The notes beneath the pieces were generated by a model that was not told the DNA's origin, did not search any database, and saw only the letters and a program-made list of their open reading frames with translations. This document shows, piece by piece, positions 10,416 through 63,627 of a stretch of DNA of 64,000 nt. This DNA is from Heterodontus francisci (lineage: Eukaryota): positions 32,706,430-32,770,429 of the forward strand of contig NC_090399.1 in the NCBI RefSeq assembly GCF_036365525.1, given 5' to 3'. Each line of letters starts with the position of its first letter. Within the stretch, counting starts at the first letter, position 1. Made by a program: the position numbers and the translations under genes.

Positions 10416-11311
10416 TTAATTTACTGGCGATTGTGATCCTGTCCCGGGGAAAGTGCGGCCTCTCCACCTGCACCACTCGCTACCTGGTGGCCATGGCAAT
10501 AGTGGATCTACTGCTCATTATCACTGAGGTCATACTGCAGCGGATCAGATCTTATTATTTCCCAGGATCTTTCCTGAATATCACCCCTGTGTGTAGTGTT
10601 AACATTGTCCTGAATTGTGCAGCCACAGACTGTTCTGTCTGGTTCACCGTTACTTTCACCTTCGATCGATTTGTGGCCATTTGTTGCCAGAAGCTGAAAA
10701 CTAAATATTGTACCAAGGAAACTGCGGCTGTGGTTCTAGCAACAACCTGCATTCTGCTCTGTTTAAAAAATATTCCCATGTACTTTACATACAAATCTGG
10801 AGAGATAATCGACAATGTACCGTGGTTCTGTTATCCAAAGCCAAGCTATTATACTGAGCCCGGATGGGTGGGATTTTCCATGTTTAATAAGGTTTTAACC
10901 CCATTACTCCCATTTGCTTCAATCCTGTTGCTCAACGCTCTGACAGTCAGACACATTTTAGTGGCCAGTCGAGTCCGTAAGGGACTGAGGGGTCAGAGCA
11001 AGGGAGAGAATCGCAGTGACCCAGAGATGGAGAGCAGAAGGAAGTCTGTGATTTTACTCTTCAGCATATCTGGCAGCTTCATACTTCTGTGGTTGGTAAA
11101 TGTTTTATATTACTTTAACATCGGATATCACTTTGATTCTGATTCTTTTTATATATTTCAACAAGTCGGATTTATGCTGCACAATTTAAGTTGCTGCACA
11201 AACACATTTATTTATGTGGTGACTCAGTCCAAGTTCAGACAGCAGGTCAAGATCACGGTGAAATATCCAGTTACATCAATTATTCAATTAATGAACAAAC
11301 AAAACAACTGA
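10416..11311 (+). CDS. GPR139-like class A GPCR, coding exon 2 (total 320 aa, intact)
   Basis: Acceptor TTCTTTCTCTTACAG|; VNLLAIVILSRGKCGLS, TM2 YLVAMAIVDL, DRF motif, ECL2 Cys, TM7 NTFIY; seven hydrophobic segments. Confidence 0.9.
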
Positions 11312-15782: not shown

Positions 15783-17290
15783 TTTTTTAAAAAATTCATT
15801 CAGGGATGTGGGTGTCACTGGCCAGGCCAGCATTTATTGCCCATCCCTAATTGCCCTTGAGAAGGTGGTGGTGAGCTGCCTTCTTGAACGCTGCAGTCCA
15901 TTTGGGGTACGTACACCCACAGTGCTGTTTGGAAGGGAGTTCCAGGATTATGGCCCAGTGACAGTGAAGGAACGGTGATATAGTTCCAAGTCAGGATGGT
16001 GTGTGACTCGGAGGGGAACTTGCAGGTGGTCGTGTTCCCATGCAGTTGCTGCCCTTGTCCTTCTAGTTGGTAGAGGTCGTGGGTTTGGAAGGTGCTGTCT
16101 AAGGAGCCTTGGTGCATTGCTGTAGTGCATCTTGTAGATGGTACACACTGCTGCCACTGTGCGTTGGTGGTGGAGAGAGTGAATGTTTGTAGATGGGATG
16201 CCAAGCAAGCGGGCTGCTTTGTCCTGGATAGTGTCGAGCTTCTTGAGTGTTGTTGGAGCTGCACCCATCCAGGCAAGCGGAGAGTATTCCATCACACTCC
16301 TGACTTGTGCCTTGTAGATGGTGGACAGGCTTTGGGGAGTCAGGAGGTGAGTTACTCGCTGAGGGATTCCTAGCCTCTGACCTGCTCTTGCAGCCACGGT
16401 ATTTATATGGCTACTCCAGTTCAGTTTCAGGTCAATGGTAGCCCCTAGGATGTTGATAGTGAGTGTTTCAGTGATCAGAATGCCATTGAATGTCAAGGGG
16501 AGATGATTAGATTCTGTCTTGTTGGAGATGGTCATTGCCTGGCATTTGTGTGGCGTTAATGTTTCTTGCCACTTATCAACCCAAGCCTGGATATTGTCCA
16601 GGTCTTTTTGCATTTCTACACGGACTGCTTCAGTATCTGAGGAGTCACGAATGGTGCTGAGCATTGTGCAATCATCAGCGAACATCCCTACTTCTGACCT
16701 TATGATTGAAGGTAGGTCATTGATGAAGCAGCTGATGATGGTTGGGCCGAGGACACTACCCTGAGGTACTCCTGCAGTGATGTCCTGGAGCTCAGATGAT
16801 TGACCTCCAACAACCACAACTATCTTCCTTTGCGCTAGGTATTACTGCAGCCAGCGGAGGGTTTTCCCCCTGATTCCCATTGACCTCAGTTTTGCTCGGG
16901 CTCCTTGATGCCATACTCGGTTAAATGCTGCCTTGTTGTCAAGGGCAGTCACTCTCCCCTCACCTCTTGAGTTCAGCTCTTTTGTCCATGTTTGAACCAA
17001 GACTGCAATGAGGTCAGGAGCTGAGTGGCCCTGGCGGAACCCAAACTGAGCGTCACTAAGCAGGTTATTGCTAAGCAAGTGACGCTTGGTGACGCCTTCC
17101 ATCACTTTACTGAGAGTAGGCTGATGGGGAGGTAACTGGCTGGGTTGGACTTGTCCTGGTTTTTGTGTAGAGGACATACCTGGGCAATTTTCCACGTTGC
17201 AGGGTAGATGCCAGTGTTGTAGCTGTACTGGAACAGCTTGGCTAGGGGCACGGCAAGTTCTGGAGCACAGGTCTTCAGCACATCTTCTTT
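15783..17290 (-). mobile_element. 5'-truncated copy of the tRNA-headed CR1-group LINE family
   Basis: 289-aa RT ORF nearly identical to 47846-49300; tail CATCCCTGAATGAAT. Confidence 0.92.
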
Positions 17291-29879: not shown

Positions 29880-31002
29880 GAAACCCAGCAGACCCAGCAC
29901 AGACCCAAAAAAACCGAACAAATCCACTCCCCAAACTGCAGCAAAACCCATGAACCCATAAGACCGCCCAAACACCAGCAAAACCCATCAGATCCCCACA
30001 AACACCAGCAGAAAAACCCATCAAACCCTCTCCCCAAACATCAGAAAACTCATCAGACACCATGAGCAGCAGCAAAACGCAACAAACCCACTCCCCAAAT
30101 ACCAGCAAAACCTATTAGACCCAGTTTCCAAACACAAGCAAAACACATCAGACTGTAGGATTGAGTTTATTTTATGATGGTATAGTATATTTCCATCTTC
30201 ACTGTCTGCGGCGCATTATAGTTTTATCCTTGTAGGGCAAAATCACAAATGCAGCAGTCCGCTCACAGGCAGAGCTCCTAAGTGTGTTGCACTAATCAAA
30301 CAGAGGAGGCTTCGGTGGACCAGACACATCCACAGGATGGAAGACATTCATATAGCCAATGACCTTCTGTATGGTGATGTAGCTCACTCCAGATGACCAG
30401 TGGGGCATCAAATCTCCACTTCAAAGATGCTTACAAGCGTGACATGAAGGCCCTTAATATCGACCTGGGAGTCACTAGCTGGTGAAAGAGGGAAATGGCG
30501 ACACATCCTGTGGAATAGTGTGCACTACCACGACGACCAGTTGCTACAGCAGGTTGGCAACATGCGCCAAAATCAAAAACTACAACTCACAGCGTCACTT
30601 GGCAGTTTCACGTGCAGGACTTGTAGCAGAACCTGCCTCTCAAGGATTAGCCTTCACAGCCATCAGCAAAGGTGCACCAAGAGAAGACACCCCACCGACA
30701 TGGATTGTTTGCTGTGTGTCCACCAACTTTCATCGATGGAAGAATGCCAACCAGCCAGTACTGTTAGAACTTACTTGTCATATCCTTAAGTAAATCTGAT
30801 AAAAGCAAAACCCATCAGACCTACAAACACCAGCAAAACCCATCAGACCCACTCCCCAAACAGCAAAACCCATCAGACCCACTCCCCAAACAGCAAAACC
30901 CATCAGACCCACTCCCCAAACAGCAAAACACATCAGACCTACAAAACATCAGTAAAACCCATCAGACCTACTCCCAAAACACCAGCAAAACTGATCAGAC
31001 CC
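29880..31002. repeat. Degenerate ~30-bp tandem repeat (CAGCAAAACCCATCAGACCCACTCCCCAAA), resuming at 34640-35010 and 37920-38000
   Basis: Same motif in four blocks separated by TE insertions. Confidence 0.85.
30265..30760 (+). mobile_element. RTE LINE 3' fragment
   Basis: DLLYGDVA, FKDAYKRDMKAL, FTCRTCSRTCLSRISLHSHQQRC. Confidence 0.8.
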
Positions 31003-31054
31003 ATCTGGTTCACTAATTTCCTTTAGGGAAAGAAATCTGCCGTCTTTACCTGGT

Positions 31055-31394
31055 TTAGTTTAGTGATACAGCACTGAAACAGGCCCTTCGGCCCACTGAG
31101 TCTGTGCTGACCATCAACCACACATTGATACTAATCCTACACTAATCCCATATTCCTACCACATCCCCACCTGTACCTATATTTCCCTACCACCTACCTC
31201 TACTAGGGGCAATTTATAATGGCCAATTTACCTACCAACCTGCAAGTCTTTTGGCTGTGGGAGGAAACCGGAGCACCCGGAGGAAACCCACGCAGACACA
31301 GGGAGAACTTGCAAACTCCACACAGGCAGTACCCAGAATTGAACCCGGGTCGCTGGAGCTGTGAGGCTGCGGTGCTAACCACTGCGCCACTGTG
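31055..31394 (-). mobile_element. V-SINE (HE1-like), full length
   Basis: A box TGGCGCAGTGG, B box GGTTCAATTC, V-domain; TSD CTGGT. Confidence 0.92.
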
Positions 31395-33895
31395 CTGGTC
31401 TGGCTTACATGTGACTCCAGACCCACAGCATTGTGGCTGACTCTTAAAATGTCCTCTGAAATGCCTAGCAAGCCATTCAGTTGTACTTAACCACTAAAAA
31501 GTTGATCAGGAATGAAACCGGACGGACCACCGAGCATTGACCTTGGCACCGTAAACAACAGCGGCAAACCCAGCCATGTCGACCCTGCAAAGTCCTCCTT
31601 ACTAACATCTGGGGGCTTGTGCCAAAGTTGGGAGAGCTGTCCCACAGACAAGTCAAGCAACAGCCTGACATAGTCATACTCACGGAATCATACCATACAA
31701 TGTCCCAGACACGACCATCACCATCTCTGGTTATGCCCTGTCCCATGGCTGGACAGACCCAGCAGAGGTGGCGGAACAGTGGTACACAGTAGGGAGGGAG
31801 TTGCCCTGGGAGTCTTCAACATCGACTCTGGACCCCATGAAATCTCATGGCATCAGGTCAAACATGGGCATGGAAACCTCCTGCTGATTACCACTTACCA
31901 ATCTAACTCAGCTGATGCATCAGTATTCCTCCATGTTGGACACCACTTGGAGGCAGCAAGGGCGCAGAATGTACTCTGGGTGAGGTGCATCAATGTCCAT
32001 CACCAAGAGTGGCTCAGTAACACCACTATTGACCTAGCTGACCCAGTCCTAAAGGACATAGCTGCAAGACTTGGTCTGCAGCAGGTGGTGAGGGAACCAA
32101 CAAGAGAGAAAAACATACTTGACCTCATCCTCAGTAATCTGCCTGCCACAGATGCAACTGTCCATGAGAGTATTGGTAGGAGTGACCACCGCACAGTCCT
32201 TGTGGAGACAAAGTGCCGACTTCACATTGAGGATCCCCTCCATTGGGTTTTGTGGCACTACCACTGTGCTAAATGGGATAGATTTCGAATAGATCTAGCA
32301 ATGCAAAACTGGGCATCCATGAGGTGCTGTGGATCATCTGCAGCAGCAGAATTGTACTCAATCACAATCTGTAACCTCATGGCCCTGCATATTCCCCACT
32401 CTACCATTACCATCAAGCCAGGGGATCAACCCTGGTTCAATAAAGAGTGTAGGAGGGCATGCCAGGTGCAACACCAGGCATACCTCAAAATGAGGTGTCA
32501 ACTCGGTGAAGCTGCAACCCAGGGCTACTTGCGTGTCAAACAACATAAGCAGCATGCGATAAACAGAGCTAAGTGATCCCACAACCAACAGATCAGATCT
32601 AAGCTCTGCAGTCCTGCCACATCCAGTCAAAAATGGTGGTGGACAATTAAATTATTAACAGGAGGAGGTGGCTCCACAAATATCCCCATCCTCGATGATG
32701 GGAGAGTCCAGCACAACAGTGCAAAGTTAAGGCTGAAGCATTTGCAACAATCTTCAGCCAGAAGTGCCGAGTTGATGATCCATCTCGGCCTCCTCCTGAA
32801 GTTCCCAGCGATCCAGATGCCAGTCTTCAGCCAATTCTATTCACTCCGCGTGATATCAAGAAACAACTGGATACTGCAAAGACTATGGGCCCTGACAACA
32901 TTCCGGCAATAGTACTGAAGATTTGTGCTCCAGACCTTGCCGTGCCCCTAGCCAAGCTGTTCCAGTACAGCTGCAACACTGGCATCTACTCGGCAATGTG
33001 GAAAATTGCCCAGGTATGTCCTGAACACAAAAAAAAGGGGACAAATCCGACCTGGCCAATTACCATCCCATCAGGCTATTCTCGATGATCAGTAAAGTGA
33101 TGGAAGGTGTCATCAACAGTGCTATCAAGCGGCACTTGCTTAGCAATAATCTGCTCAGTGATGCTCAGTTTGGGTTCCACCAGGGCCAGTCAGCTCCTGA
33201 CCTCATACAGCCTTGGTTCAAACATGGACAAAAGAGCTGAACTCAAGAAGTGAGGTGAGAGATACGACCCTTCAGATCAATGCAGCATTTGACCGAGTAT
33301 GGCATCAATGAACCCCAGCAAAACTGGAGTCAATGGGAGTCAGGGGGAAATCTCTCCGCTGGGTGGAACCATACCTAGCGCAAAGGAAGATGGCTGTGAT
33401 GGTTGGAAGTCAATCATCGCAGTTCCAGGACATCATTGCAGGAATTCCTCAGAGTAGTGTACTAGGCCCAACCATCTTCAGCTGCTTCATCAATGACCTT
33501 CCTTCAATCATAAAGGTCAGAAGTGGGGATGTTCGCTGATGATTGCACAATGTTCAGCACCATTCGTGACTCCTCAGATACTGAAGCAGTCCGTGTAGAA
33601 ATGCAGCAAGACCTGGACAATATCCAGGCTTGGGCTGATAAGTGACAAGTAACATTTGCGCCACACAAGTGCCAGGCAATGACCATCTCCAACAAGAGAG
33701 AATCTAACCATCTCCCCTTGACATTCAACAGCATTACAATCACTGAATCCTCCACTATCAACATCCTGGGGGTTACCGTTGACCAGAAACTGAACTGGAA
33801 TAGCCATATAAATACCATGGTTCAGCCATGCGCGGAGGCTAGGAATCCTGCGCTGAGTAACTCACCTCCTGACTCCTCAAAGCCTGTCCACCATC

Positions 33896-34108
33896 TTTTT
33901 TTTTTTAGAACATTACAGCGCAGTACAGGCCCTTCGGCCCTCAATGTTGCGCCGACCTGTGAAACCATCTGACCTACACTATTCCATTTTCATCCATATG
34001 TCTATCCAATGACCACTTAAATGCCCTTAAAGTTGGCGAATCTACTACTGCTGCAGGCAGGGCGTTCCACGCCCCTACTACTCTCTGAGTAAAGAAACTA
34101 CCTCTCAC
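33896..34108 (-). mobile_element. Short CR1 3' end
   Basis: FFTQRVVGAWNALP; TSD CATCT. Confidence 0.85.
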
Positions 34109-35009
34109 ATCTACAAGGCACAAGTTAGGAATATGATGGAATACTCTCCACTTGCCTGGATGGATGCAGCTCCAACAACAGTCAAGAAGCTCGACACCAT
34201 CCAGGACTAAGCAGCCCGCTTGATTGGCACCCCATCCACAAACATTCACTCCCTTCACCACTGACACACAGTGGCAGCAGTGTGTACCATCTACAAGATG
34301 CACTGCAGCAATGCACCAAGGCTAGTCAGGCAGCGCCTTCCAAACCTGCAACCTCAACCACCTAGAATGACAAGGGCTGCAGATTCATGGGAACACCACC
34401 ACCTGCACGTTCCCCTCCAAGCCACACATCAACCTGACTTGACACTAAATCACCATTCCTTCACTGTCGCTGGGTCAAAATTCTGGAACTCCCTTCCGAA
34501 CAGCACTGTGGGTGTACCTACCCCACATGGACTGCAATGGTTCATGAAGGCAGCTCACCACCACCTTCTTAAGGACAATGAGGGATGGGAAATAAGTGCT
34601 GGCCTGGCCAGTGATACCAACATCCCATGAAATGAATAAATCAACCCAATCCCCAAACACCAGCAAAACCCATCAGACGCCGAAACTTCAGCAACACCAA
34701 TCAGACCCACTCTACAAAAACCAGCAAAACCCCGTAGATCCCCAAACATCAGCAAAATACATCAAACCCAGTCCCAAACACCAACAAAACCCATCAGACC
34801 AAGCCCGAACTCCAATAAAACCCATCAGACCCACTCCCCAAACACCAGCAAAACCCATTAAACCCACTCCCGAATTACCAGCAAAACCCATTAAACCCAC
34901 TCCCGAATTACCAGCAAAATCCATCAGACCCACTCCTCAAAACACACAAAACCCACCAGATCCACTCCCCAAATGCCACCAAAACCCAAAAACCCACTTG
35001 TCCGAACCT

Positions 35010-37920
35010 ACAAATTAAGAGTAGGCCACTCAGCCCCTCGAGCCTGCTCCGCCATTCAAAAAGATCATGGCTGATCTGATTGTAACCGCAATTCCACATT
35101 CCCGCCTAGCCCAAATAACCTTTCACCCCCTTGTTTATCCAGAATCTATCTAGCTCCGCCTTAAAAAATATACAAAAACTCTGCTTCCACCACCTTTTGA
35201 GGAAGAGAGTTCCAAAGACTCACGATTGAGAAAAGAAATTCTCCTCATCTCTGTCTTCAATGGGTGATCACTTATTTTCAAACAGTGACCCCTAGCTCTA
35301 GATTCTCCCACAAGGGGTAACATCCTTTCCATATCCACCCTGTCAAGACCCCTCAGGATCTTATATGTTTCAATCAGGTCACCTCTTACTCTTCTAAATT
35401 CCAGCGGATACAAGCCTAGCCTGTCCAACATTTCCTCATAAGAAAACCTGCCCATTCCAGGTGTTAGTCTAGTAAACTTTCTCTGAACTGCTTCCAAAGC
35501 AGTTACCTCCTTCCTGAAATAAGGAGACCAATACTGTACACAGTATTCCAGATGTGGTCTCACCAATATAGCTGAAGCATAACCTCCCTACATTTTTTGT
35601 TCAATTCCCTTTGCAATAATTGATAACATTCGATTAGCTTTCCCATTTACTTGCTGTACCTGCATACTAACATTTTGTGATTCATGTACTAGACACCCAG
35701 ATTCTTCTGCATCTCAGAGCTCCGCAATCTCTCACCATTTAGATAATATGCTTCTTTTGTATTCTTCCTGCCAAAGTGGACAATTTCACATTTTCCCACA
35801 TTATACTCCATTTGCCAGATCTTTGCCCACTCACTTAACCTATCTATATCCCTTCGTAGCCTCCTTATGTCCTCTTCACAACTTACTTTCCTACCTATCT
35901 TTGAGTCATCAGCAAATTTAGCAACCATATATTTGCTCCCTTTATCCAAGTCATTTATATAAGTTGAAAAAAGTTGAGGCCCCATCACTGATCCCTGTGG
36001 CACACCACTCGTTACATCTTGTCAACCAGAAAATGACCCATTTATGCCTACTCTCTGTTCCCTGTTAGCTAGCCAATCTTTTTTTTAAGAGATACAGCAC
36101 TGAAACAGGCCCTTCGGCCCACCGAGTCTGTGCCGAACATCAACCACCCATTTATACCAATCCTACACTAATCCCATATTCCTACCAAACATCCCCACTT
36201 GTCCCTATATTTCCCTACCACCTACCTATACTAGTGACAATTTATAATGGCCAATTTACCTATCAACCTGCAAGTCTTTTTGGCTTGTGGGAGGAAACCA
36301 GAGCACCCGGAGAAAACCCACGCAGACACAGGGAGAACTTGCAAACTCCACACAGGCAGTACCCGGAATCGAACCCGGGTCCCTGGAGCTGTGAGGCTGC
36401 GGTGCTAACCACTGCGCCACTGTGCCACTATAAGATTTAATCTTATATTAATGCCAACATGTTACCCCCTACACCAAGAGCTTTTACTTTCCACATCGAA
36501 TAAATTGGTTAAGAAAGATTTCCCTTTCGCAGAACCATGTTGACTCTGCTTGATTACCTTGACTTTTTCTAAATGCCCTGCTATATTGTCTTTAATTATA
36601 GCTTCTAACATTTTCCCCCAAGACAGATGTTAAACTAACTGGCCTATAGTTTCCTGCTTTCTGTCTCCCTCCATTTTTAAATAAAGGAATTACATTGGCT
36701 ATTTTCCAATCTACTGGAACCTTCCCTGAATCTAGGGAATTCTGTAAAATCAAAACCAATGTCTCTGCTGTCACACGAGCCACTTCTTTTAACACCCTAG
36801 GATGAAGGCCATCAGGACCTGGGGACTTGTCAGCTCGCAGCTCCAACAATTTTCTCAGTACTACTTCACTGGTGATTGTAATTCCCTCCCTTCCATTTCC
36901 TGATTTACAGCTATTTCTGGGATGTTACTTGTATCCTCTATGGTTAAGTCCGATGCAAAATATCTGTTCAATTCATCTGCCATCTCCTTATTTTCCCTTA
37001 TTAATTCCCCAGACTCACTTTCTATAGGACCAACGCTCACTTTGTTAACTCTTTTCTTTTTCATTATCTATAGAAACTCTGACCATCTGTTTTTTATATT
37101 ACCTGCCAGCTTTCTCTCGTACTCTAATTTTTCCCTCCTTATTAATCTTTTAGTTATTTTTCCTGCTTTTTTATATTCTGTCCAATCTTCTTACCTGCCA
37201 CTCATCTTTGAGCAATTATAAGCTTTTTCTTTACGTTTGATACTATCTTTAACATTTTTAGTTAACCATGGATAGTGGGTCCTCCCCTTGGCATTTTTCT
37301 TTCTCATTGGAATGTATCTATTCTGCATATTCTGAAATATACCCTTAAATGTCTGCACTGCATCTCTATTGATCTATCCCTTAACCTACTTTGCCAGTTC
37401 ACTTTTGCTAGCTCGGCTTTCATTCCCTCATAATTGCCCTTATTTAAATGTAAAATACTAGACTTGGAGCTGTCCTTCTCGCCCTAAAACTGAATATAAA
37501 ATTCAATCATATGATGATTGCTGCTGCCTAGGGACGCCTTCACTATGAGATCATTAATTAATCCCATCCCATTGCACAATACCAAGTCTAATGAGCCTGC
37601 TCTCTGATTGGCTCTAGACATGCTGTTCTAAGAAACTATCCTGAAAACATTCTCTGAACTCCTCATCAAGGCTACCTTTGCCCATCTGCTTTTTCCAACC
37701 TATATGTAGATTAAAATCCCCCATGATTATCGCCGTACCTTTCTGACAAGCACCCATTATTTATTTCTTTATACCCCATCCTACCTGCGGTAACTGTTCG
37801 GGGGCCTGTACACCATTCCCACCAGTGACTTCTGGCCTCTATCATTTCTCATCTTGACCCAAACTGCTTCTACATCCTGGTTTCCTGAACTTAGGTCATC
37901 CCTTTTTATTAGCACTATCC
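35010..37920 (-). mobile_element. CR1 LINE ORF2 fragments (APE to RT to tail)
   Basis: [42 protein letters not shown]. Confidence 0.92.
36079..36427 (-). mobile_element. V-SINE (HE1-like) nested in CR1
   Basis: Nearly identical to 31055-31394. Confidence 0.92.
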
Positions 37921-40802: not shown

Positions 40803-41203
40803 TTTTTTTTTCCGTTCATGGGATGCGGCCGTCGCTGGCTAGGACAGCATTTATTGCCCATCCCTAATTCCCTTGAACTGAGTGGCTTGCTCGGCCATTT
40901 CAGAGAGCATTTAAGAGTCAACCACACTGCTGTAGATCTGGAGTCACATGCAGGCCAGACCAGGTAAGAACGGCAGATTTCCTTCCCTAAAGGATATTTG
41001 TGAACCAAATGGGTTTTGACGACAATTAACAATGGTTTAATGATCACCATCAGACTAGCTTTTTTTAAAATTTGAGATTTATTAATTGAATTCAAATTCC
41101 ACCATCTGTCATGGTGTGATTCAAAACCCATGTCTCAGAGCACTAGCCTAGGCCTCTGGATTACTAGCCCAGTGACATTAACACTACACCATAGCCTCCG
41201 CCC
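40803..41203 (-). mobile_element. tRNA-derived SINE equal to head plus tail of the LINE at 46093-49387
   Basis: Degenerate A and B boxes; colinear with 46093-46413, then jumps to 49311-49387; absent from the 3' LTR. Confidence 0.92.
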
Positions 41204-44355: not shown

Positions 44356-44999
44356 ATTTCCTGGAATAATCCCAGATTGAGTGCTGACTAGATCCCAGGC
44401 TCATCCGATTAAACAGAGCGAGATTCAGCTGTGTGGAGAACAATCCGGATGTTTATTTGGCTGAAACTTTTTTCAAGGGTTTGGAGGGGGATATTGGTGG
44501 AAAAGGCTCCAACGTTAGCAATGGTGCATTGTTTAGCAGATTGTCTTTGATTGAGGCACAACAGGCAGACCCTGACTTCAGAAGTTTGTCTCAAACAGTG
44601 TGTTCTGAGGCAGAAGCTGAAAAGGTGCCTGAGTTTTGCTGTGTCAAGAATAAAATTCTAATGAGAAAGTGGAAAGCTGTCCAGAGGTCTGTTCATGAGA
44701 ATTGGGCTATCGTTCATCAGATTGTTGTTCAAACTTTGAGAATTGCCCATGAGATCCCAGTGGCAGGTCATGTGGGTATTCGAAAAACTCAGGCCAGGAT
44801 AAGGTGGCATTTTTATTGAGCAGATTTGCACAAAGATGTGGTTGAATTCTGCAGAACTTGCCATACATGTCAGGTAGTTGGGAAGCCACAGCCTTCATTT
44901 AAACCAGCCCCATAGATACCAACACCTGCTTGAGATGAACCGTTTAGTCAGTTCTTGTTGACTGTGGCAGACCTTAACCCTCAACCTTAACCCACTTCA

Positions 45000-47900
45000 C
45001 AGAAAAAACAGCCATGGACAACTAAAGAGATGAGGGAAAGCATAAAACAAAAAGAAATGGCTCACAAAAACGCAAACGCAGCACAGATCCGGCTGAATGG
45101 GATTGATACAAAAACCAGCAAAGGGTCACAAAATAGCTTATAAGAGCTACTAAAAGAGATTATGAAAGGAAACTTGCAAGGGACATCAAAATCAATAAGA
45201 AGAAATTTTATAGTTACATAAAGGGAAAATGGGTGGTCACAAGCAATATAGGCCCACTAAAAGATGAAAATGGAGATATTGTCATTGATAATGGGGAAAT
45301 GGCAGATATGTTGAACAATTACTTTGCCTCAGTATTTACAGTTCAAAAGGAGGATGACTTGCCGGAAGTCCCGAAAAAATTAATAGCCGATAGGGGACAG
45401 GGACTTAATACAATTAACGTAAGTAAATCATCAGTAACAAGAAAATTAATGGAACTAACGAGTGAGAAATCCCCAGGACCTGACTGTTTCCATCCCAGGG
45501 TGTTAAAGGAAGTAGGCAACCACATTGTAGATGCCCTAACGATAGTCTTTCAGAGTTCCCTAGATTCAGGAGTGCTCCCTCTGGATTGGAAAGTTGCACA
45601 TGTCACTCCACTTTTTAAGAAGGGTGAAAGGGGGAACCAAGGAAATTACAGACCAGTTATCCTGACATCTGTGGTGGGCAAGTTGCTGGTGTCTATAATC
45701 AAGGATAGGGTGACTGAACACCGAGAAAAATTTCAGTTAATCAGGGACAGCCAGCCTGGATTCATGATAGGAAGATCATGCCTGACAAATCTCATTGAAT
45801 TTTTTGAGGAGGTGACTAAGGTAGTGGACAGGGAGTGTCTATGGATGCCATTTATATGGACTTCCAGAAGGCATTTGATAAAGTTCCACATAAGAGACTG
45901 TTAACTAAGGTAGAAGCCCATGGAGTTGAGGGCAAATTATTGACATGGTTAGGAGGTTGGTTGAATGGTAGGCGACAGAGAGTGGGGATAATGGCTAAGT
46001 ACTCTAATTGGCAGGATGTAACGAGTGGTGTCCCGCAGGGACCTGTGTTGGGGCCTCAATTATTCACATTATTCATTAATGACTTGGATGATGGGTAGGC
46101 AGTGGCGTAGTGGTGTTATCACTGGACTAGTAACCCAGAGACCCAGGGTATTTCTCTGGGGACTTGGGTTCGAGTCCCACCACAGCAGAAGGTGGAATTT
46201 GAATTTAATTAATAAATCTGGAATTAAAAGCTAGTCTAATGATGGCCATGAAACCATTGTCGATTGTTGTGAAAACCCATCTTGTTCACTAATTTCCTTT
46301 AGGGAAGGAAATCTGCTGTCCTTACCTGGTCTGGCCGACATGTGACTCCAGACCCACAGCAATGTGGTTAACTCTTACATGCCCTCTGAAATAGCCTAGC
46401 AAGCCACTCAGTTGTATCTAACCGCGACAAAGTCTATAAAAAGGAATGAAACCGGACGGACCACCCAGCATCTACCTAGGCACTAGAAACAACAGTGGCA
46501 AACCCAGCCCTGTCGACCCTGCAAAGTCCTCCTTACTAACATCTGGGGGCTTGTGCCAAAGTTGGGAGAGCTGTCCCACAGACTAGTCAAGCAACAGCCT
46601 GACATAGTCATACTCATGGAATCATTCCTTTCAGACAATGTCCCAGACACTGGCATCACCATCCCCGGGTATGTCCTGTCCCACCGGCAGGACAGACCCA
46701 ACAGAGGTGGTGGCACAGTGATATACAGTAGAGAGGGAGTTGCCCTGGGAGTCCTCAACATCGATTCCAGACCCCATGAAGTCTCATGGCATCAGGTCAA
46801 ACATGGGCAAAGTAACCTCTTACTGATTACCACCTACCGCCCTCCCTCAGCTGATGACTCAGTACTCCTCCATGTTGAACACCACTTGCAGGAAGCACTG
46901 AGGGTGGCAAGGGTACAAAATGTACTCTGGGTGGGGGACTTCAATGTCCATCACCAAGAGTGGCTCGGTAGCACCACTACTGACCGAGCTGGCCGAGTCC
47001 TAAACGACATAGCTGCTCGACTGGGTCTGCAGCAGGTGGTGGGGAAACCAACACGAGGGAAAAACATACTTAACCTCATCCTTACCAATCTGCCTGCCGC
47101 AGATGCTTCTGTCCATGACAGTATTGGTAGGAGTGACCACCGCACAGTACCTGTGGAGACGAAGTCCCGCCTTCACGTTGAGGATACCCTCCATCGTGTT
47201 GTGTGGCACTATCACCGTGCTGAATGGGATAGATTTCGAACAGATCTAGCAATGCAAAACTGAGCATCCATGAGGCGCTGTGGGCCATCAGCAGCAGCAG
47301 AATTGTAGTCAACCACAATCTGTAACCTCAAAGCCTGGCATATCCCCCACTCTACCATTACCATCAAGCCAGGAGACCAACCCTGGTTCAATGAAGAGTG
47401 CAGGAGGGCATGCCAGGAGCAGCACCAGGCATACCTCAAAATGAGGTGTCAACCTGGTGAAGCTACAACCCAGGACTACTTGCATGCCAAGCTGCGTAAG
47501 CAGCATGCGATAGACAGAGCTAAGCGATCCCATAACCAACGGATCAGATCCAAGCTCTGCAGTCCTGCCACATCCAGCCGTGAATGGTGGTGGACAATTA
47601 AACAATTAACTGGAGGAAGTGGCTCCACAAATATCCCCATCCTCAATGATGGGGGAGCCCAGCACATCAATGCGAAAGATAAGGCTGAAGCATTTGCAAC
47701 AATCTTCAGCCAGAAGTGACGAGTTGATGATCCATCTCGGCCTCCTCCTGAAGTCCCCAGCATCACAGATGCCAGACTTCAGCCAATTCGATTCACGCCC
47801 CGTGATATCAAGAAGCGACTGAAGGCACTGGATACTGCAAAAGTTATGGGCCCTGAGAATATTCCGGCAATAGTACTGAAGACCTGTACTCCAGAACTTG

Positions 47901-50090
47901 CCATGCCCCCAGCCAAGCTGTTCCAGTACAGCTGCAACACTGGCATCTACCCTGCAATGTGGAAAATTGCCCAGGTATGTCCTGTACACAAAAAGCAGGA
48001 CAAGTCCAACCCGGCCAACTACCGCCCCATCAGCCTACTCTCAATCATCAGTAAAGTGATGGAATGTGTCATCAACAGTGCCATCAAGCGGCACTTGCTT
48101 AGCAATAACCTGCTCAGTGATGCTCAGTTTGGGTTCCGCCAGAGCCACTCAGCTCCTGACCTCATTACAGCCTTGGTTCAAACATGGACAAAAGAGCTGA
48201 ACTCAAGAGGTGAGGTGAGAATGGCTGCCCTTGAGATCAAGGCAGCATTTGACCGAGTATGGCATCAAGGAGCCCTAGCAAAACTGAGGTCAATGGGAAT
48301 CAGGGGGAAATCTCTCCGCCGGCTGGAGTCATACCTAGCGCAAAGGAAGATGGCTGTGGTTGTTGGAGTTCAATCATCTGAGCTCCAGGACATCACTGCA
48401 GGAGTTCCTCAGGGTAGTGTCCTCGGCCCAACCATCTTCAGCTGCTTCATCAATGACCTTCCTTCAATCATGAAGTCAGAAGTGGGGATGTTTGCGGATG
48501 ATTGCACAATGTTCAGCACCATTCGTGACTCCTCAGATACTGAAGCAGTCCGTGTAGAAATGCAGCAAGACCTGGACAATATCCAGGCTTGGGCTGATAA
48601 GTGGCAAGTAACATTCGCGCCACACAAGTGCCAGGCAATGACCATCTCCAACAAGAGAGAATCTAACCATCTCCCCTTGACATTCAAAGACATTACCATC
48701 GCTGAATCCCACTATCAACATCCTAGGGGCTACCATTGACCGAAAACTGAACTGGAGTAGCCATATAAATACCGTGGCTACAAGAGCAGGTCAGAGGCTC
48801 GGAATCCTGAGGCGAGTAACTCACCTCCTGACTCCCCAAAGCCTGTCCACCATCTACAAGGCACAAGTCAGGAGTGTGATGGAATACTCTCCACTTGCCT
48901 GGATGGGTGCAGCTCCAACAACACTCAAGAAGCTCAACACCATCCAGGACAAAGCAGCCTGCTTGATTGGCACCCCATCTACAAATATTCACTCCCTCCA
49001 CCTCAACGCACAGTAGCAGCAATGTGTACCATCTACAAGATGCACTGCAGCAATGCACCAAGGCTCCTTAGACAGCACCTTCCAAACCTGCGACCTCTAC
49101 CAACTAGAAGGACAAGGGCAGCAAATACATGGGAACACCACCACCTGCAAGTTCCCCTCCAAGTCACACACCATCCTGACTTGGAACTATATCGCCGTTC
49201 CTTCACTGTTGCTGGGTCAAAATCCTGGAACTCCCTTCCTAAAAGCACTGTGGGTCTACCTACCCCAAATGAACTATAGCGGTTCAAGCAGGCAGCTCAC
49301 CACCACCTTCTCAAGGGCAATTAGGGATGGACAATAAATGCTGGCCTGGCCAGTGACGCCCCCATCCCATGAATGAATAAAAAAAAAGTCCAAATTTGCT
49401 GATGATACAAAGTTAGACAGAATTGTAGACAGTCTAGATGATAGCATAAAATTGCAAAGAGATATTGACAGACTAGGTGAGTGGGCAAAACTGTGGCAGA
49501 TGGATTTCGATGCGGGCAAGTACGAGGTTATCCATTTTGGACCAAAGAAGGATAGAGCAGGGTACTTTCTAAATTGGATGAGGTTAATTACAGTGGATGT
49601 CCAAAGAGACTTGGGGTTCAGGTGCATAGATCTTTGCTTAACAAAAAACTATCTCAGATTTAAAATTAGCAACTGTTCCAGCTTCAACTGCTGTTTGTGG
49701 GAGAGAGTTCCAAACCTCTACCACCCTTTGCATGAAGAAGTGCTTCCTAACCTCTCTCCTGAATGGTCTGGTCCTAATTTTTAGACTGTGCCCCCTAGTT
49801 TTAGAATCTCCAACCCATGGAAATAGTTTATCTTTATCTAGCCTGTCTTTTCCTGTTAATATCTTGAAGACTTCAATCAGATCACTCCTTAACCTTCTAA
49901 ATTCTAGCGAAAACAGGCCTAATTTGTGTAATCCCTCCTCGTAACGTAACGCAAAGATATTAAGGGATATGGGCCAAAGGTAGGTATATGGAGTTAGGCC
50001 ATGGATCAGCCATGATTTAATTGAATGGCAGGACAGGCTCGAGGGGCTGAATGGCCTACTCCTGTTCCTAACGTCCTATGTCCTATGTTC
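45000..50090 (+). mobile_element. CR1 ORF2 fragment in the Gypsy integrase, itself interrupted at 46093-49387 and with an inverted piece at ~49630-49945
   Basis: KSPGPDCFHPRVLKE..FINDLDD, resuming SKFADDTK at 49388; CCTATGT tail. Confidence 0.9.
46093..49387 (+). mobile_element. Full-length single-ORF (APE-RT) CR1-group LINE with a tRNA-derived Pol III 5' end
   Basis: A box TGGCGTAGTGG 46103-46113, B box GGTTCGAGTCC 46167-46177; APE motifs (TNIWGL, WVGDFN, SDH); RT motifs (PQGSVLGP, FADD); tail ATGAATGAATAAAA; few stops or frameshifts. Confidence 0.93.
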
Positions 50091-53017
50091 CCACAATGAA
50101 GTCAGGTCACAAGTTTCTCTGAACCATCATGGATTTGTCCACTAGGTTTCCAGAGGCACCAGCTTTGAGAAATATCACTGTGAAAGTTGTGATTGAGGGT
50201 TAATTCAGTTTTTCATTCGATATGGATTGCCAAAAGAAATTCAGTTGGACCAGGGGTCAAATTTCATGTTGGGGTATTTCAAGAGATCACAGTAATTTGT
50301 GAGTGAAACAGCTCAAATCGTCTGCGGTTACAAGGTGCTTTGGAAAAGTATCACCAAACCTGCAAAAGTATGATAATGACCTATTGTTCTGAGTATCCTC
50401 ATGATTGGAATAAGGGGATATCATTTTTATTACTGCCACTAGGGACACACCAAATGAGTCCACTGATTTCAGTCCATTTGAATTGGTCCATGGGCATGAG
50501 GTTAGGAGTTCCCTTAAACTCATTAAGGGGAGATTTGTAGCACAGGAAGAGGAAACTACCCTCTTAGATTATGTGTCAGAGTTTCAACAAAGACTCACAC
50601 AAGTTTATGAGGTGGCAGAGAACATCAAGAACAGCAAACGGAAAGAACAGCTAAGGCACACAGTAATGGCCTGCTATCCGACCCGAACCCAAAGGATGAT
50701 ATAATTGAACCCCGTCAAAGTAGCTGGAGTTCTCCAGTTGTGCTGGCACAAAAGCCAGATGGTTTCAAAAGATTTTGTACTGATTATCAGAAAGTCAATG
50801 CAGTAACTAAAACAGACTTTTTATCGAAAACCACAACTTGAGGATTATATTGACAAAGTGGGGAATTCAATCTTTATTCGCAAGATTACTTGCTGAAAAG
50901 TTATTGGAACATCCCCTTGACCAACCAAGCTAAAGAAGTTTCTGCCTTTGTGACCCCAGATGGCCTATCTCAGTTTAAGGTCATGCTGTTTACTTAGAAA
51001 AATGCACCAGCAACATTTCAAAGGTTGATTAACCATGTGATTGCTGGACGAAGCAATTACATTGTGTACCTGGATGATTTGTGGGTATACAGTGACACTT
51101 GGGAGGATCATGTTCTACAGGTTGGAGAAAGCCAATTTGGTAGTGAACTTAGCGAAGTTTGCCAAGCTCAAGGTCGTGGGTCAAGGTCAAGTGTTGCCTA
51201 AAGAAGCTAAGGTTCAGGTGATAATAGACATTCCAGTCCCCAAGACAAAACGGGAGACAGTACAATTCCTAGGGATGTGTGGGTTCTGCCAGAAATTCAT
51301 TCCTAACTTCAGTACAGTAGCTGAACCACTGACAATTTTGTTTAAAATTAAGGATATGAAGGTCCAGTGGACAGAATCCTGTCAAATAGCATTTGAAAAG
51401 TTAAAGACCATTTTAATAAATGAACCCATTCTAGCAGCACCAAATTTTGGCAAGCCCTTTACAGTAGTGACTGATGCCAGTGATGTAGGAGTAAGAGCAG
51501 TATTACTCCAGGATGATGATACTGCTTTCGAACCACCAGTCATTTCTCCAGAAAACTCAATAAGTACCAGAAGTACTCCATGAGTGAAAAGGAGGCTTTA
51601 GGGCTCATTTTGACTCTTCAACATTTTGAAGTATACGTCAATAATGGGCAAGGAGAAATAACTGTTTATACCGGTCATAATCCATTAAGGTTTTTAGAGA
51701 AGTTCAAAACCAAGAATGCCAGATTAAGTTGGTGGAGTTTAACGTTGCAACCATTTACCCTAAAGACTGTACATGTTACAGGAAAAAGCAATGTAATTGC
51801 CGATGCTCTATTCAGAATTTAAAGAAAGGGTATAATGGAGGAAAGCAACTCAGATATAAAATACTGTTACCGGTGTAAAGAGTTCATAATGTAAATGTTT
51901 ACAATGTTATATGTTGATAATGTTGTAAAGAAATAATTGCTACAGTAATGAATTTTCTATTTTTTGGGGGGGATGTTATGAACACTGGACTTTGTAGCAT
52001 TTAACTTTGCAGGTTTTAAAAACTGGGACTTTTAAAAGTTAAGATGGAGTCAGAGATGTCAGGTGACCTCACATCAACTCTGCTTAAAGACATTTTGGTC
52101 ACCAGGACAAGAACCCAGATCAAAGACCTTTCTGAAAAGCAGTGACTGTAGGGCATTTACCACCTGATGAACAATGGGTTTCACCCTCCCAGATTTTCAG
52201 ATCGTATACAAGAAGGCAGTGACTCTGAGGATGTAAATACAAGTGGAAATTGGCAACACCAGGAAACAATGAAAAGCCTGGGTGGCTCTGCTGTAGCCAG
52301 ACTTGTGGACTTTGCAGATTGGAAGAGACAACTGGCTATTGACTTTGATTCTGGATAAATTCAACAGATATTCAGAAGCCACCAGGCTGTAACGAAGACC
52401 AGCTGTGGAAGCCTCAGAGAGGAGAGAGAGAGAGAAAACACCTGCTCTCAGAAGACTGATACAACGAAAGGTTGCAAAACTTTAACCTGTTTTGAAAGTT
52501 CATGTTAGCGGAGAAGTGAAGACCAACCAGATCACCAGGGATCACCTTATTCACATACAGCCAGGCCGAAAGTGCTGGGAAGAAGTCAGCAAAGAGGACA
52601 TTGACTTTGAGAAAGGTCTGGGAGATCCAACCCATTGCAACTGGCAGGGGTTTGGGACTTTTAGCAGCAGAGATATCACCATCAAGGAGAATCGTGCAAC
52701 ATATAAGTGTGGTGCGAGGTTTACAAGTGTTTGAATAAATGAATATCTTTCTCTGTAACTTGGGGTATCAGCTACTTACAAAATATTGTTTAGTTAATGG
52801 GAATTTTTTTTTAGTTTCGATAAATCTTGCCCTGTAATTCCTGAAATTGCTCTGGGAAGGACATATCTTGTGTTTTACCATTAACGGTCTCACTGAGGTG
52901 GAAACACTGTGTATCCTGGGCCTCAGCCTGTCCTGGGCTGGTAGCTCAGCACTGACCCTCCCTCCTGTGCTCCTGCTCTGAGGCTGGGTCCCCTCTAACA
53001 GTGAGAGGCAGTCTTAC

Positions 53018-58850: not shown

Positions 58851-58945
58851 ACAGCTCACCACCACCTTCTCAAGGGCAATTAGGGATGGGCAATAAATGC
58901 TGGCCTAGCCTGTGACGCCCACATCTTCTGAACAAATAAAAAAAA
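58851..58945 (+). mobile_element. Extreme 3' end of the tRNA-headed LINE family
   Basis: Matches 49293-49387, including the LINE-only CAGCTCACCACCACCTTC. Confidence 0.85.
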
Positions 58946-58999: not shown

Positions 59000-61900
59000 T
59001 CTACCTGGAGGGAGTTGGGAGATGCGGTGGACCTGCGAAGAACCAACTACCAGTGAGCATATAAAGTGAGACCCAGCTCGGGGTCTTCACCTACCTGGAG
59101 GAAGTTGGGAGAGGTGGCGGACCTGTGAGGAACCTGGAGCGTATAAAGCGAGACCCAGGCTCAGTGTCTTCACCTACCTGGAGGGAGCCGGGAGAGGTGG
59201 CGGACCTGCGAAGAGCCAACTATATGCCGGAGTTCGAAAAAAAAAAACACCTCGACTTACCTGGGAGCGGAGCGGCGACTGGCGGACTTGAGAGGAAGCT
59301 GATCAGGAGCGGCGGCAGGCTATAAATAAAGAATGAGGCTCGAGGTCCTTACTTACCTGGGAACGGAGCGGCGACTGGCTCCCTGTGCCTCTCTGTGCCG
59401 GTGCACGATGAGACTCGAAAGAGGGAAAAAGACTGACAGTGACATCACGGGAAATGTGCAAGGTGATTGGTTGGTTAAGGAACAGCTGTTAGTGCATTTA
59501 AATAGCTTAAAAAAGGGAAAGTTGTTTTTTTGTTTGAAAAAAGACCTCAAATGATAAAGTGAATACTACTAGTGTGTTTTTTTTAATTAGTGTAATTTAG
59601 ATTGTAGGGGTAGTGTTTGGAGTAGAACAAGGCCCCTAGTGTAATCAGTACTTTTTTAAAGGGAGTAACTAATTAATCTGAGGGTAAGTCCTGACAGGAG
59701 AGCTCAGCCCCGTGATATGCTCCTCCTGTGCTATGTGTGAAATCAGGGACGCTTCCAGTCTCCCTGACGACCATGTGTGCAGTAAGTGTATCCATCTGCA
59801 GCTACTAGCAACCCGCATTACGGAGCTGGAGCTGTGGGTGGATTCACTGTGGAGCATCCGCGATGCTGAGGACGTCGTGGATAGCACGTTTAGTGAGGTG
59901 GTCACACTGCAGGTAATGGCTGCACAGGCAGAAAAGGGATGGGTGACCACCAGGGGGACTAGTAGGTGCAGACAGGTAGTGCAGGAGTCCCCTGTGGCCA
60001 TCCTCCTCTCAAACAGATATACCGCTTTGGATACTGTTGGGGGAGATGGCCTCCCAGGGGAAAGCAGCAACAGCCAGGTTCGTAGCACCACGGAGGGCTC
60101 TGCTGCACAGGAGGTGAGGAAAAGGGGTGGAAGAGCTATAGTGATAGGAGATTCTATCATAAGGGGTGCAGATAGGCGTTTCTGTGGCTACAAATGTGAC
60201 TCCAGGACGGTATGTTGCCTTCCTGGTGCTAGGGTCAAGGATGTCTCAGAGCGGACACAGGACATTCTGAAGGGAGAGGGTGAACAGTCAGAGGTCATGG
60301 TTCACATTGGTACCAACGACATAAGTAAAAAGAGGGCTGAGGCCCTGAAACAAGAATTTAGGGAGGTAGGTAGCAGATTAAAAAGCAGGACCTCAAAGGT
60401 TGTCATCTCTGGATTACTCCCAGTACCACGTGATGATGAGTATAGGAATAGGAGGATAGAGCAGATGAATGCGTGGCTTATGAGATGGTGCAGGAGGGAC
60501 GGTTTTAGTTTTCTGGATCACTGGGTCTGTATCTGGCAAAACTGGGACCTGTACAAGTTGGATGGGTTGTACCTGAACTGGAACGGGGCCAACATCCTTG
60601 CTGGGAGGTTTGCTGGTGCTGTTGGTTGGGGGGGGTTAAATTAATTTGGCAGGGAGATGGGATACAGAGTGGAGGTACAGTAGGGGGTGATGCTCAGTCA
60701 AATATAGAAGAGAAACTGAGTCAGTCTGGAAGGCAGAGCAAATATAAACCTGTTAAGGCACAAGTGAAAAATGCAAGGCTGGATTGCATCTATTTTAATG
60801 CAAGGAGTCTGACGAGTAAGGCAGATGAATTGAGGACATTGATTCGCACATGGGATTATGATATTGTTGCCATCACAGAGACACGGTTGAGGGTGGAGCA
60901 GGACTGGCAACGCAATATTCCAGGGTATAGAATCTTCAGGCATGACAGGGGAGGGGATAAAAGAGGAGGTGGTATTGCACTGTTGATCAAGGAGCCAATT
61001 ACTGCAGTAAGGAGGGATGATATCTTGGAAGGTTCCTCAAATGAGGTCATTTGGGTAGAACTTATAAACAAAAAGGGGGAAATCACTTGGCTGGGTGTGT
61101 ACTAGAGGCCTCCAAACAGTCAGGAGGAGATAGAGGAGCAGGCAAATCTCAGAGAGGTATAATAATAGTAGGGGATTTCAACTTCCCCAATATTAACTGG
61201 GATAGTCTTAGTGCAAAAGGCTTAAAGAGGGCGAAATTCTTAAAATGCATACAGGAGAGCTTTTTGAGCCAGTATGTAGAAAGTCGTACAAGAGCAGGGG
61301 CAGTACTGGACCTAATCCTAGGGAATGAAGCCAGACAATTGGTAGAAGTGTCAGTTGGAGAGCATTTTGGAGATAGTGACCATAACTCTAAGGTTTAAGG
61401 TCGTTATGGAAAAGAACAAAGATGGACCAGAAATAAAGGTACTGAATTGGGGGAAGGCCAATTTCAATATGATAAAACAGGATCTGGCCAAAGTGGACTG
61501 GGAGCAGCTACTTGTAGGAAAGTCTACATCACATCAGTGGGAGTCATTCAAAGAGGAAATAGTGAGAGTCCAGAGCCAACAACATGTACCCGTTAAGGTG
61601 AAGGGTAGGACCATCAAGTCCAGGGAACCCTGGATGTCAAGGGATACAGAGCATTGAATCAGGAAAAAAAAGGAGGTTTATGGCAGATCCCAAGCGCTGA
61701 AAACAGCGGAGGCACTAGAGGAGTATAGAAAGTGTAGGATACACTTAAAAAAGTAATTAGGAGAGCGAAGAGAGAGCATGAAAAAACACTGGTGGGCAAG
61801 ATAAAGAAAAATCTCAAGGCATTTTATAAGTATATTAAGGGCAAGAGGATAACCAGGGAAAGAGTAGGACAAAAGTAGGGACCAAAGTGGCAATCTGTGT

Positions 61901-63627
61901 GTGGAGCTAGAGGTCATAGGTGAGGTTTTAAATGATTAACTCTGTGTTCACTATGAAGAAGGACAATGTAGGTGTAGAGATTAAGGAGGGGGATTGTGAT
62001 CGACTTGAACATATTAGCATTGAAAGGAAGGAAGTATTAGATGTTTTAGCAGGCTTAAAGGTAGATAAATCCCCAGGCCCAGATGAGATGTATGTCAGGC
62101 TGTTATGTGAGGCAAGGGAGGAGATAGCAGGGGATCTGACACAAATTTTCAATTCCTCTCTGGCCACAGGAGAGGTACCAGAGGACTGCGAATGTGGTAG
62201 CATTATTCAAGAAGGGTAGTAGGGATAAACCAGGTAATTACAGGCTGGTGTGTCTAACATCAGTGGTTGGGAAAAAATTGGAAAAATTTCTGAGGGACAG
62301 GATTAATCTCCACTTGGAGAGACAAGGATTAATCAGGGATCATCAGCATGGCTTTGTCAGGGGGAGATCATGTCTAACAAACTTGATTGAATTTACCGAG
62401 GCACTGACTAGATGTGTAGATGAGGGCAAAGCAGTTGATGTAGTCTACTTGGACTTCAGTAAGGCTTTTGATAAGGTACTGCATGGGAGATTGGTTAAGA
62501 AGGTAAGAGCCCATGAGATCCAGGGCAATTTGGCAAAGTGGATCCAAAACTAGCTTCGTGGCAGGAGGCAGAGGCTGATGGTCGAGGGTTGTTTTTGCGA
62601 ATGGAAGCCTGTGACCAGTGGTGTACCACAGGGATCGGTGCTGGGACCCTTGCTGTTTGTAGTGTATATTAATGATTTAGATGTGAATATCAGAGGTATG
62701 ATCAGTAAGTTCGCAGATGAGACAAAAATTGGTGGTGTCACAAATAGTGAGGAGGAAAGCCTTAGATTACAGGATGATATAGATGGGCTGGTAAGATGGG
62801 CGGAGCAGTGGCAAATGGAATTTAATCCTGAGAAGTGTGAGGTGATACATTTTGGGAGGACTAACAAGTCGAAGGACTATACAATGGATAGTAGGACCCT
62901 GGAAAGTACTGCGGGTCAGAGGGACCTTGGTTTACTTGTCCATAGTTCACTGAAGCAGCAGCACAGGTAGATAAAGGTGGTTAGGAAGGCATATGGGACA
63001 CTTGCCTTTATCAGCCGAGGCATAGAATATAACAGCAGGGAGGTTATGGAGCTGTATAAAACGTTAGTTAGGACACATCTGGAGTACTGTGTACAGTTCT
63101 GGTCACCACACTATAGGAAGGATGTGATTGCACTGGAGAGGGTGCAGAGGAGATTCACCAGGATGTTGCCTGGGCTGGAGCATTTCAGCTATGAAGAGAG
63201 ACTGAAAAGGCGAGGGTTGTTTTCCTTAGAGCACAGAAGGCCGAGGGGGGACATGATTGAGGGATACAAAATTATGAGGGGCATTGATAGGATAGATAGG
63301 AAGAAACTTTTTCCCTTAGCAGAGGGATCAATAACCAGGGGACACAGATTTAAGATAAGGGGCAGGAGGTTTAGAGGGTATTTGAGGAAATTTTTTTCAC
63401 CCAGAGGGTGGTTGGAATCTGGAACACACTGCCTGAAGAGATGGTAGAGGCAGGAACCCTCACAACATTTAAGAAGCATTTTGATGAGCACTTGATACGC
63501 CATAGCATACAAGGCTACGGGTCAAGTGCTGGAAAATGGGATTAGAATAGTTAGGTGCTTGATGGCTTGCATGGACACGATGGGCTGAAGGGCCTGTTTC
63601 TGTGCTGTATAACTCTGACTCTATGAC
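59000..63627 (+). mobile_element. Full-length decayed CR1 LINE: tandem 5' UTR units, ORF1 (Zn finger/leucine zipper plus SGNH esterase, ~59691-60644), ORF2 APE-RT (~60780-63450), tail
   Basis: CSSC..CSKC; GDS, PGA, GTND and DGLY (catalytic His lost); YFNARSL, GDFN, PQGSVLGP, FADE; CTATGA-type tail. Confidence 0.95.

Follow-up and report, generated by a model that had tools for sequence, protein, structure and literature searches.

The 64,000-nucleotide stretch of Heterodontus francisci DNA analysed here (contig NC_090399.1, positions 32,706,430 to 32,770,429; hereafter the window) carries at positions 46093-49387 a 3.3-kb retrotransposon of the long interspersed nuclear element (LINE) type whose first bases are those of a short interspersed nuclear element (SINE). 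From its 5' end onwards the element consists of a tRNA-related head, a SINE-type body, a region encoding an apurinic-type endonuclease followed by a reverse transcriptase (APE-RT), and a 3' tail that closes on a run of A [Table 1]. An earlier note on this DNA had proposed that RNA polymerase III (Pol III) transcribes such an element, and that selection has cleared its sense strand of Pol III terminators.

A tRNA-derived head, a coding region and a tail inserted as one unit

The element is nested in the reverse transcriptase region of a CR1-type LINE, whose reading frame (FINDLDDG / SKFADD) it splits, and forms one discrete insertion. Four sequencing runs, one a metatranscriptome and the other three bearing codes of different organisms, supplied contigs that were aligned to the element; these contigs carry no RNA start, end or strand, and their depth was not taken as copy number, in keeping with a warning of the tool. 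Contigs from three runs contain paralogous copies of the host CR1 without the insert, in which an empty-site joint (46095->49390, with 16 other letters between) fixes the boundaries of the insert and indicates that head, coding region and tail came in a single event. By the same joint, the insertion cost the target a few bases and left no clear target-site duplication. The head, the open reading frame (ORF) and the tail are thus shown here to be a single retrotransposed unit, copied from one RNA. That a SINE fragment merely came to lie beside a 5'-truncated LINE, by chance or through an assembly artefact, is most improbable: one empty-site joint takes in the element from end to end, the same junction recurs in an older copy of the family and in two gene models (P0002 and P0003), and a SINE without a 3' tail cannot insert by itself through target-primed reverse transcription, which effectively excludes chance adjacency.

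The consensus A and B boxes that had been claimed for the start of the element are exact, and both motifs are rare in the window, where the second match to the B box sits in a different SINE. The A box begins at a distance of 7-10 nt from the element's 5' end, the place of tRNA position 8, with a similar spacing in the SINE copy described below. ARAGORN calls the head a 91-nt tRNA. The Rfam tRNA model gave no match to it at E<=1, nor was any other credible RNA family found in Rfam, and the minimum free energy (MFE) fold of the head is not a cloverleaf (fold z = -1.8); the head is best described as tRNA-derived and not as a tRNA. A TATA-like CTATAAAAAGG at 46434-46444, just past the border between SINE-shared and LINE-only sequence, is probably not a conserved promoter, as the older copy lacks it.

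Downstream of the body, the endonuclease and reverse transcriptase domains follow each other, in the order typical of APE-type LINEs, on one frame path that runs from about 46487 to a natural stop, TAA 49335-49337, in the tail. The description of this region as a single APE-RT ORF without ORF1 stands as regards domain content and the missing ORF1, for which the ~300-390 nt of SINE-type head and body upstream of the endonuclease leave no room; it does not stand as regards the ORF itself, which in this copy is broken by in-frame stops and a frameshift [Table 1]. At several of the break sites nearly all family contigs differ from the 46093-49387 copy, and at 46484 two gene models, P0001 and P0002, have a sense codon, indicating that the breaks are private to a fairly young copy. 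The 46093-49387 element is thus a dead but fairly young LINE copy. For the reverse transcriptase domain, the nearest relatives outside the family are ~45-50% identical, some of them called 'jockey-like'.

Met1 of P0002 aligns to 46391, in the endonuclease frame, and the model continues across the SINE/LINE border; the SINE copy reads ATG GCC GAG at this site, and both LINE copies of the window that reach it carry a stop two codons on. Together, the gene model and the SINE suggest that the start codon of the family probably lies inside the SINE-shared body, which would leave a 5' untranslated region (UTR) of ~298 nt. The ATG at 46446 was rejected as the ORF start because neither LINE copy has it in the endonuclease frame. 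In both, the ORF that follows from this ATG is 46 codons long and runs into the beginning of the endonuclease region.

The partner SINE and other copies of the family

The resemblance of the first ~320 nt to a SINE is borne out by a minus-strand copy, the partner SINE at 40803-41203, in which 41197-40876 matches the element up to 46413 and 40876-40803 matches 49311-49385 (75 nt). Since the two halves match head plus body and tail with nothing between them, the partner SINE is the 46093-49387 element minus 46414-49310. This deletion removes almost exactly the coding region yet leaves what is probably the start codon, along with the final codons, in place, and many joints of the SINE type (46369..46421 -> 49291..49312) are found in contigs of all four runs. 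Internal A and B boxes in a tRNA-related head, as in tRNA-derived SINEs, are present in the 3.3-kb element, which differs from such SINEs (short, under about 600 nt, and non-coding) in encoding APE-RT; its derivative at 40803-41203 is both short and non-coding. Had a headless LINE captured SINE sequence, the capture would need to have fallen precisely on the border between body and tail of the SINE; one deletion in a LINE already equipped with this 5' region is the simpler history.

Alternatively, the family may have followed a history of the Bov-A/Bov-tA type. The master LINE would then be headless and driven by an internal RNA polymerase II (Pol II) promoter in a ~200-nt 5' UTR (46189-46390); a bipartite non-autonomous derivative made of the 5' and 3' ends of the LINE would have gained a tRNA head and become the SINE; headed LINEs would be secondary, having arisen through a switch of the reverse transcriptase from LINE RNA to SINE RNA in the shared 5' homology or through DNA recombination; and the paucity of T runs discussed below would reflect composition and codon usage. 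We consider this history unlikely, although far from negligible. The route is documented for Bov-B/Bov-A/Bov-tA, SINE2-1_ACar and hagfish RTE-derived SINEs (PMC4494074, PMC7245038). The ~225 nt at the 5' side and 75 nt at the 3' side that are common to SINE and LINE favour homologous switching, a switch onto active SINE RNA would also account for the perfect boxes and the SINE-like 5' end, and the older LINE copy gives no sign of the tRNA part. On the other hand, chimeras born of template switching are expected to be a small minority, yet the only full-length copy in the window is headed, and no headless full-length copy was seen among the two copies of the window that reach the 5' region.

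The older LINE copy had been reported, as 31003-34640, to repeat the junction between head and ORF. What it shares is the junction of the body into the ORF and, before that, the final ~139 nt of the body; it aligns only from the equivalent of 46275, and the head with its A and B boxes is missing. The junction between body and ORF is nonetheless supported as a family feature, as opposed to chance adjacency, by this copy and by P0002 (EukProt) and P0003 (labelled Heterodontus francisci), both of which cross it. The headed LINE would be a self-propagating lineage and not a one-off chimera; the sole full-length copy of the window has the tRNA part. The copies of the window are anchored at their 3' ends and variably truncated at their 5' ends (starts equivalent to 46275 and 47873, and one tail-only fragment), as is usual for LINEs. 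In the four runs contig cover thickens toward the 3' end and matching pieces number hundreds of thousands, which, together with the SINE-type joints, indicates that the family and its deletion derivatives are widespread and abundant. A search with a piece of the endonuclease revealed no related loci in metagenome or viral contigs; the junction pattern returned 28 loci in metagenome contigs, all of them chance matches (blastn gave only 21-nt hits); and a conserved 23-mer was not found in the genome or viral contigs searched.

Two insertions interrupt the older copy, another SINE (31055-31394) and a retroposon fragment (33897-34107), the latter on the minus strand and starting with T11; this fragment is the source of two T runs in the raw count of the older copy. 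The interrupting SINE belongs to a second, unrelated tRNA-derived family (head GCACAGTGGCGCAGTGGTTAGCAC, B box GGTTCGATTCC) with copies at 31055-31394 (-) and 36300-36430 (-), the other of which lies inside another LINE; the 'tRNA-???' called by ARAGORN at 36354-36426 is the head of this second family. Directly against the older copy, at its truncated 5' end, lies a 30-bp minisatellite (30804-31003, 6.7 copies, unit AGCAAAACCCATCAGACCCACTCCCCAAAC). AAAACCCATC is common to the unit of this minisatellite and to the element at about 46271-46283, and the minisatellite may therefore have grown from the 5' edge of the element.

Within the tail, the stem listed in Table 1 is predicted, with an energy no better than that of shuffled sequences. 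In the truncated minus-strand copy the sense strand reads T6 then A6 directly after TGAATGAAT (15783-15800); this stretch may derive from the target, or may be a run resembling a terminator with which the element closes.

Table 1. Coordinates of the element, its parts, its host and its relatives in the window
Feature	Position	Strand	Remarks
Whole element	46093..49387	+	5' end uncertain within 46093-46096 (46096±3); self-BLAST
tRNA-related head with long variable-arm-like insert	46098..46188	+	ARAGORN: tRNA-Thr(agt), 91 nt
A box TGGCGTAGTGG	46103..46113	+	exact TRGCNNAGTGG match; 7 matches in window vs 1.0 expected
B box GGTTCGAGTCC	46167..46177	+	exact GGTTCGANNCC match; 2 matches in window vs 0.25 expected
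SINE-type body, ~225 nt	46189..46413	+	common to partner SINE; from 46275 also in older LINE copy
LINE-only segment, essentially the APE-RT coding region	46414..49310	+	absent from SINE
Span of ORF breaks	46484..49016	+	in-frame stops 46484, 47261, 47306, 47717, 49014; frameshift near 48707
Apurinic-type endonuclease domain	46538..47149	+	Pfam PF14529 Exo_endo_phos_2 (E=2.2e-12), PF03372 Exo_endo_phos (E=5.6e-10)
Reverse transcriptase domain RVT_1	47993..48652	+	Pfam PF00078, E=4.1e-34
3' tail common to SINE	49311..49378	+	ORF end, AATAAA 49333-49338, GGGATGG...CCATCCC stem, TGAATGAAT end
A9 run at 3' end	49379..49387	+	other copies: A-rich ends of varying form
Host CR1-type LINE (reverse transcriptase region)	44969..46092, resuming 49388-49775	+	target of insertion
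Partner SINE	40803..41203	-	head + body (= 46097-46413, 82% identity) joined directly to tail (= 49311-49385)
Older LINE copy	30999..34640	+	88% identity; 5'-truncated at equivalent of 46275
5'-truncated copy	15794..17281	-	91.5% identity; begins at equivalent of 47873
Tail-only family fragment	58852..58945	+	self-BLAST

Two further features lie outside the family. Downstream of the host LINE, 51041-51580 (+) is a fragment with reverse transcriptase and RNase H of a long terminal repeat (Gypsy-type) retrotransposon (Pfam PF17919). An intronless 292-aa ORF at 10433-11308 (+) has a rhodopsin-family seven-transmembrane domain (Pfam PF00001, E=3.9e-18) and resembles a chemoreceptor-type G protein-coupled receptor gene or pseudogene.

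T-run avoidance and the question of the polymerase

The earlier note had counted no TTTT and about 15 AAAA in the sense strand, and this count is accurate: the 3,286 nt of 46093-49378 hold 0 runs of four or more T (T4), as against 15 such runs of A (plus the tail), 14 of C and 8 of G, and no 6-nt window of the element holds 5 or more T. The first sense T4 lies ~150 nt downstream, in the flank, an arrangement that conforms to a type-2 Pol III unit, with no internal sense T4 and a terminator downstream. The probability that a T run is followed by a further T drops from 0.21 to 0.16, 0.10 and 0 with run length, whereas the corresponding values for A, C and G stay at 0.24-0.30. All family DNA of the window, 7.8 kb, contains a single T4 run, at 32248 in the older copy; this is, as had been stated, the sole T4 in its LINE-derived sequence, the other T runs being in the two secondary insertions. 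The copy at 15783-17290, said to be free of T4 in its body, does lack sense T4 in the body of 15794-17281 (-). Three other LINEs of the window are not depleted (7-15 T4 runs each, TT observed/expected 1.1-1.2), although, being older and C-poor, they are imperfect controls. One of these comparators, at 59712-63536 (+), is an ordinary two-ORF LINE of the CR1/L2 type in which an ORF1 with a GDSL-esterase domain (Pfam PF13472) precedes APE-RT; it is poor in C and rich in T4 (16 runs). T-run avoidance is thus real, sense-strand-specific and family-specific within the window, and grows stronger as runs lengthen. Its dependence on length and its restriction to the sense strand are left unexplained by a history of the Bov-A/Bov-tA type.

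We tentatively favour, with less than even confidence, the view that the element is a copy of a very abundant elasmobranch LINE of the CR1/L2 type (APE-RT), devoid of ORF1, whose inherited 5' UTR is the tRNA-derived SINE-type head together with the body. In favour of Pol III are the exact A and B boxes, the place of the 5' end 7-10 nt before the A box, and the T-run avoidance, including the borderline deficit under codon-preserving shuffles given below. Putative Pol III transcription of the 3.3-kb element would begin with recruitment of TFIIIC and Pol III by the A and B boxes; the template RNA would start at the first bases of the element, with the consequence that each new copy would carry its own promoter, and the T-run-poor sense strand would let Pol III read through 3.3 kb to a T run in the flank. 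The family's reverse transcriptase, acting in cis or in trans, would recognise the 3' tail common to both forms and insert the RNA by target-primed reverse transcription. Shorter deletion derivatives retaining head and tail, namely the SINE, would out-replicate the full-length form. In its complete form this proposal is doubtful, if a serious possibility: an autonomous shark LINE would have swapped the usual Pol II promoter in the 5' UTR for a tRNA-derived Pol III promoter, would keep its 3.3-kb sense strand free of terminators and would spawn SINEs by internal deletion, SINE and LINE forming one Pol III-driven family.

A number of considerations weigh against this proposal. The expectation of several T4 runs by chance, put forward in the earlier note, holds for base composition (5.1 expected, P(0)=0.006), but the expected number falls to 2.2 under an order-1 Markov (dinucleotide) model (P(0)=0.13) and to 1.0 under an order-2 model (P(0)=0.38); the codon-preserving shuffles suggested there give a borderline result, with 2.58 runs expected and none observed when synonymous codons of the ORF are shuffled (P(0)=0.046) and 2.70 when codon order is shuffled (P(0)=0.043). 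The excess over chance thus ranges, by null, over P values of 0.006-0.38, and with dinucleotide or codon structure taken into account the deficit is only borderline. The claim that selection removed Pol III terminators is accordingly not upheld: a single sequence of 3.3 kb is too little to demonstrate such selection, the three copies of the family do not count as independent samples, and the sense strands of LINEs are often T-poor for other reasons. The lack of significance under dinucleotide nulls is compatible with a headless master LINE whose T-run paucity follows from composition. Contig depth points, weakly, in the same direction, since the tRNA part has less of it than the body and does not exceed the 5' end of the ORF in this respect, a pattern that fits many copies without a tRNA head; and just one copy with both tRNA part and ORF was inspected. 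The RNAs that Pol III makes in nature measure a few hundred nt, lack a cap and are poor templates for translation. No in-frame ATG lies upstream of the endonuclease in either LINE copy of the window (46391-46486; 31440-31560), the 298-nt leader contains several upstream ATGs, and an AATAAA lies within the tail.

Some of these points would also suit a third reading, in which the headed lineage is real but its coding RNA is made by Pol II, whether the body supplies the promoter or transcription reads through from host genes. The head would then be a passenger or an RNA-processing module, for instance one in which an RNase P cut at tRNA +1 defines the 5' end, in the manner of the hepatitis delta virus (HDV)-like ribozymes in R2, RTE and L1Tc, and the lack of T4 would be incidental. 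RNase P cuts at tRNA +1, and the 5' end of the element lies at about that position, 7-10 nt before the A box, a spacing rather close for a Pol III start. The AATAAA and the A-rich ends of the copies are in keeping with Pol II, as are the borderline T4 statistics, and a protein-coding RNA of 3.3 kb suits this polymerase better. We nevertheless regard this reading as rather unlikely: the head makes a poor cloverleaf, with neither an Rfam tRNA match nor a tRNA-like MFE fold, the A and B boxes have stayed exact, and the simplest view of the SINE derivative, which has the same head, is that of a Pol III unit.

Relation to known retrotransposons

In the accepted view Pol II serves LINEs, whereas SINEs are parasites served by Pol III that have borrowed only the tail of a LINE. 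A coding LINE that inherits a SINE-type Pol III head would, if the proposal of Pol III transcription is true, blur this division, provide a new answer to the problem of how LINEs inherit their promoters and allow the direct birth of SINEs by deletion of the ORF. Even with an mRNA made by Pol II, the head, body and tail of a SINE can all be LINE-borne. Repeat annotation in shark genomes is affected as well, the family being among the most abundant repeats there. A coding-length APE-RT LINE with a tRNA-type head in the mobile unit was not found in the full-text literature, the coverage of which leaves out subscription journals and Repbase Reports; a headed consensus may already stand, without comment, in shark repeat libraries.

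The members of the HE1/HER1 pair, with which the present family is compared by description only, are said to share a tail and not a head. As far as its tabulation in PMC3747384 goes, this pair of a SINE (HE1) and a LINE (HER1) from sharks and rays (Ogiwara et al. 1999) resembles the present family in its elasmobranch host and in joining a tRNA-derived SINE to a CR1-group LINE through a conserved common 3' tail. In Bov-B LINE/Bov-A/Bov-tA, SINE2-1_ACar and hagfish SINE2-9/10_EBu, the SINE is composed of a tRNA head, the 5' end of a LINE and the 3' end of that LINE (PMC4494074, PMC7245038), and the partner SINE at 40803-41203 is a bipartite internal-deletion derivative of the same kind. The difference resides in the LINE: the autonomous partner in the Bov-B-type cases has no tRNA head, whereas here a coding-length copy, the one full-length copy inspected, carries the head and has moved with it as a unit.

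The single APE-RT ORF, the length of ~3.3 kb, the tail-sharing SINE and the short-repeat or A-rich end are features held in common with ORF1-less LINEs of the L2 clade (UnaL2/UnaSINE1; ZfL2-2), the comparison of clade being one of features and not of phylogeny. LINEs of the UnaL2 and ZfL2-2 type combine stringent recognition of the 3' tail with ordinary 5' UTRs. Other elements carry a small module of a different sort: R2, RTE and L1Tc have 5' HDV-like ribozymes, and Cassandra terminal-repeat retrotransposons in miniature (TRIMs) have 5S Pol III promoters. These resemble the present family in that a promoter or 5'-end problem is solved by a small structured RNA module, or in that a Pol III promoter is carried along; they differ in the module, a ribozyme or 5S sequence, and in the class of element, none being a tRNA-type head with A and B boxes on an APE-RT LINE. 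Finally, L1-U6 and other chimeric retrocopies of small nuclear RNA and LINE sequence arise by template switching, according to the work cited in PMC4494074, and likewise present a Pol III-type small-RNA sequence fused 5' of LINE sequence in one insertion. Such chimeras are sporadic, non-heritable and variable in their joins, whereas the junction described here is fixed, recurs in several copies and species, and lies at the border of the SINE deletion.

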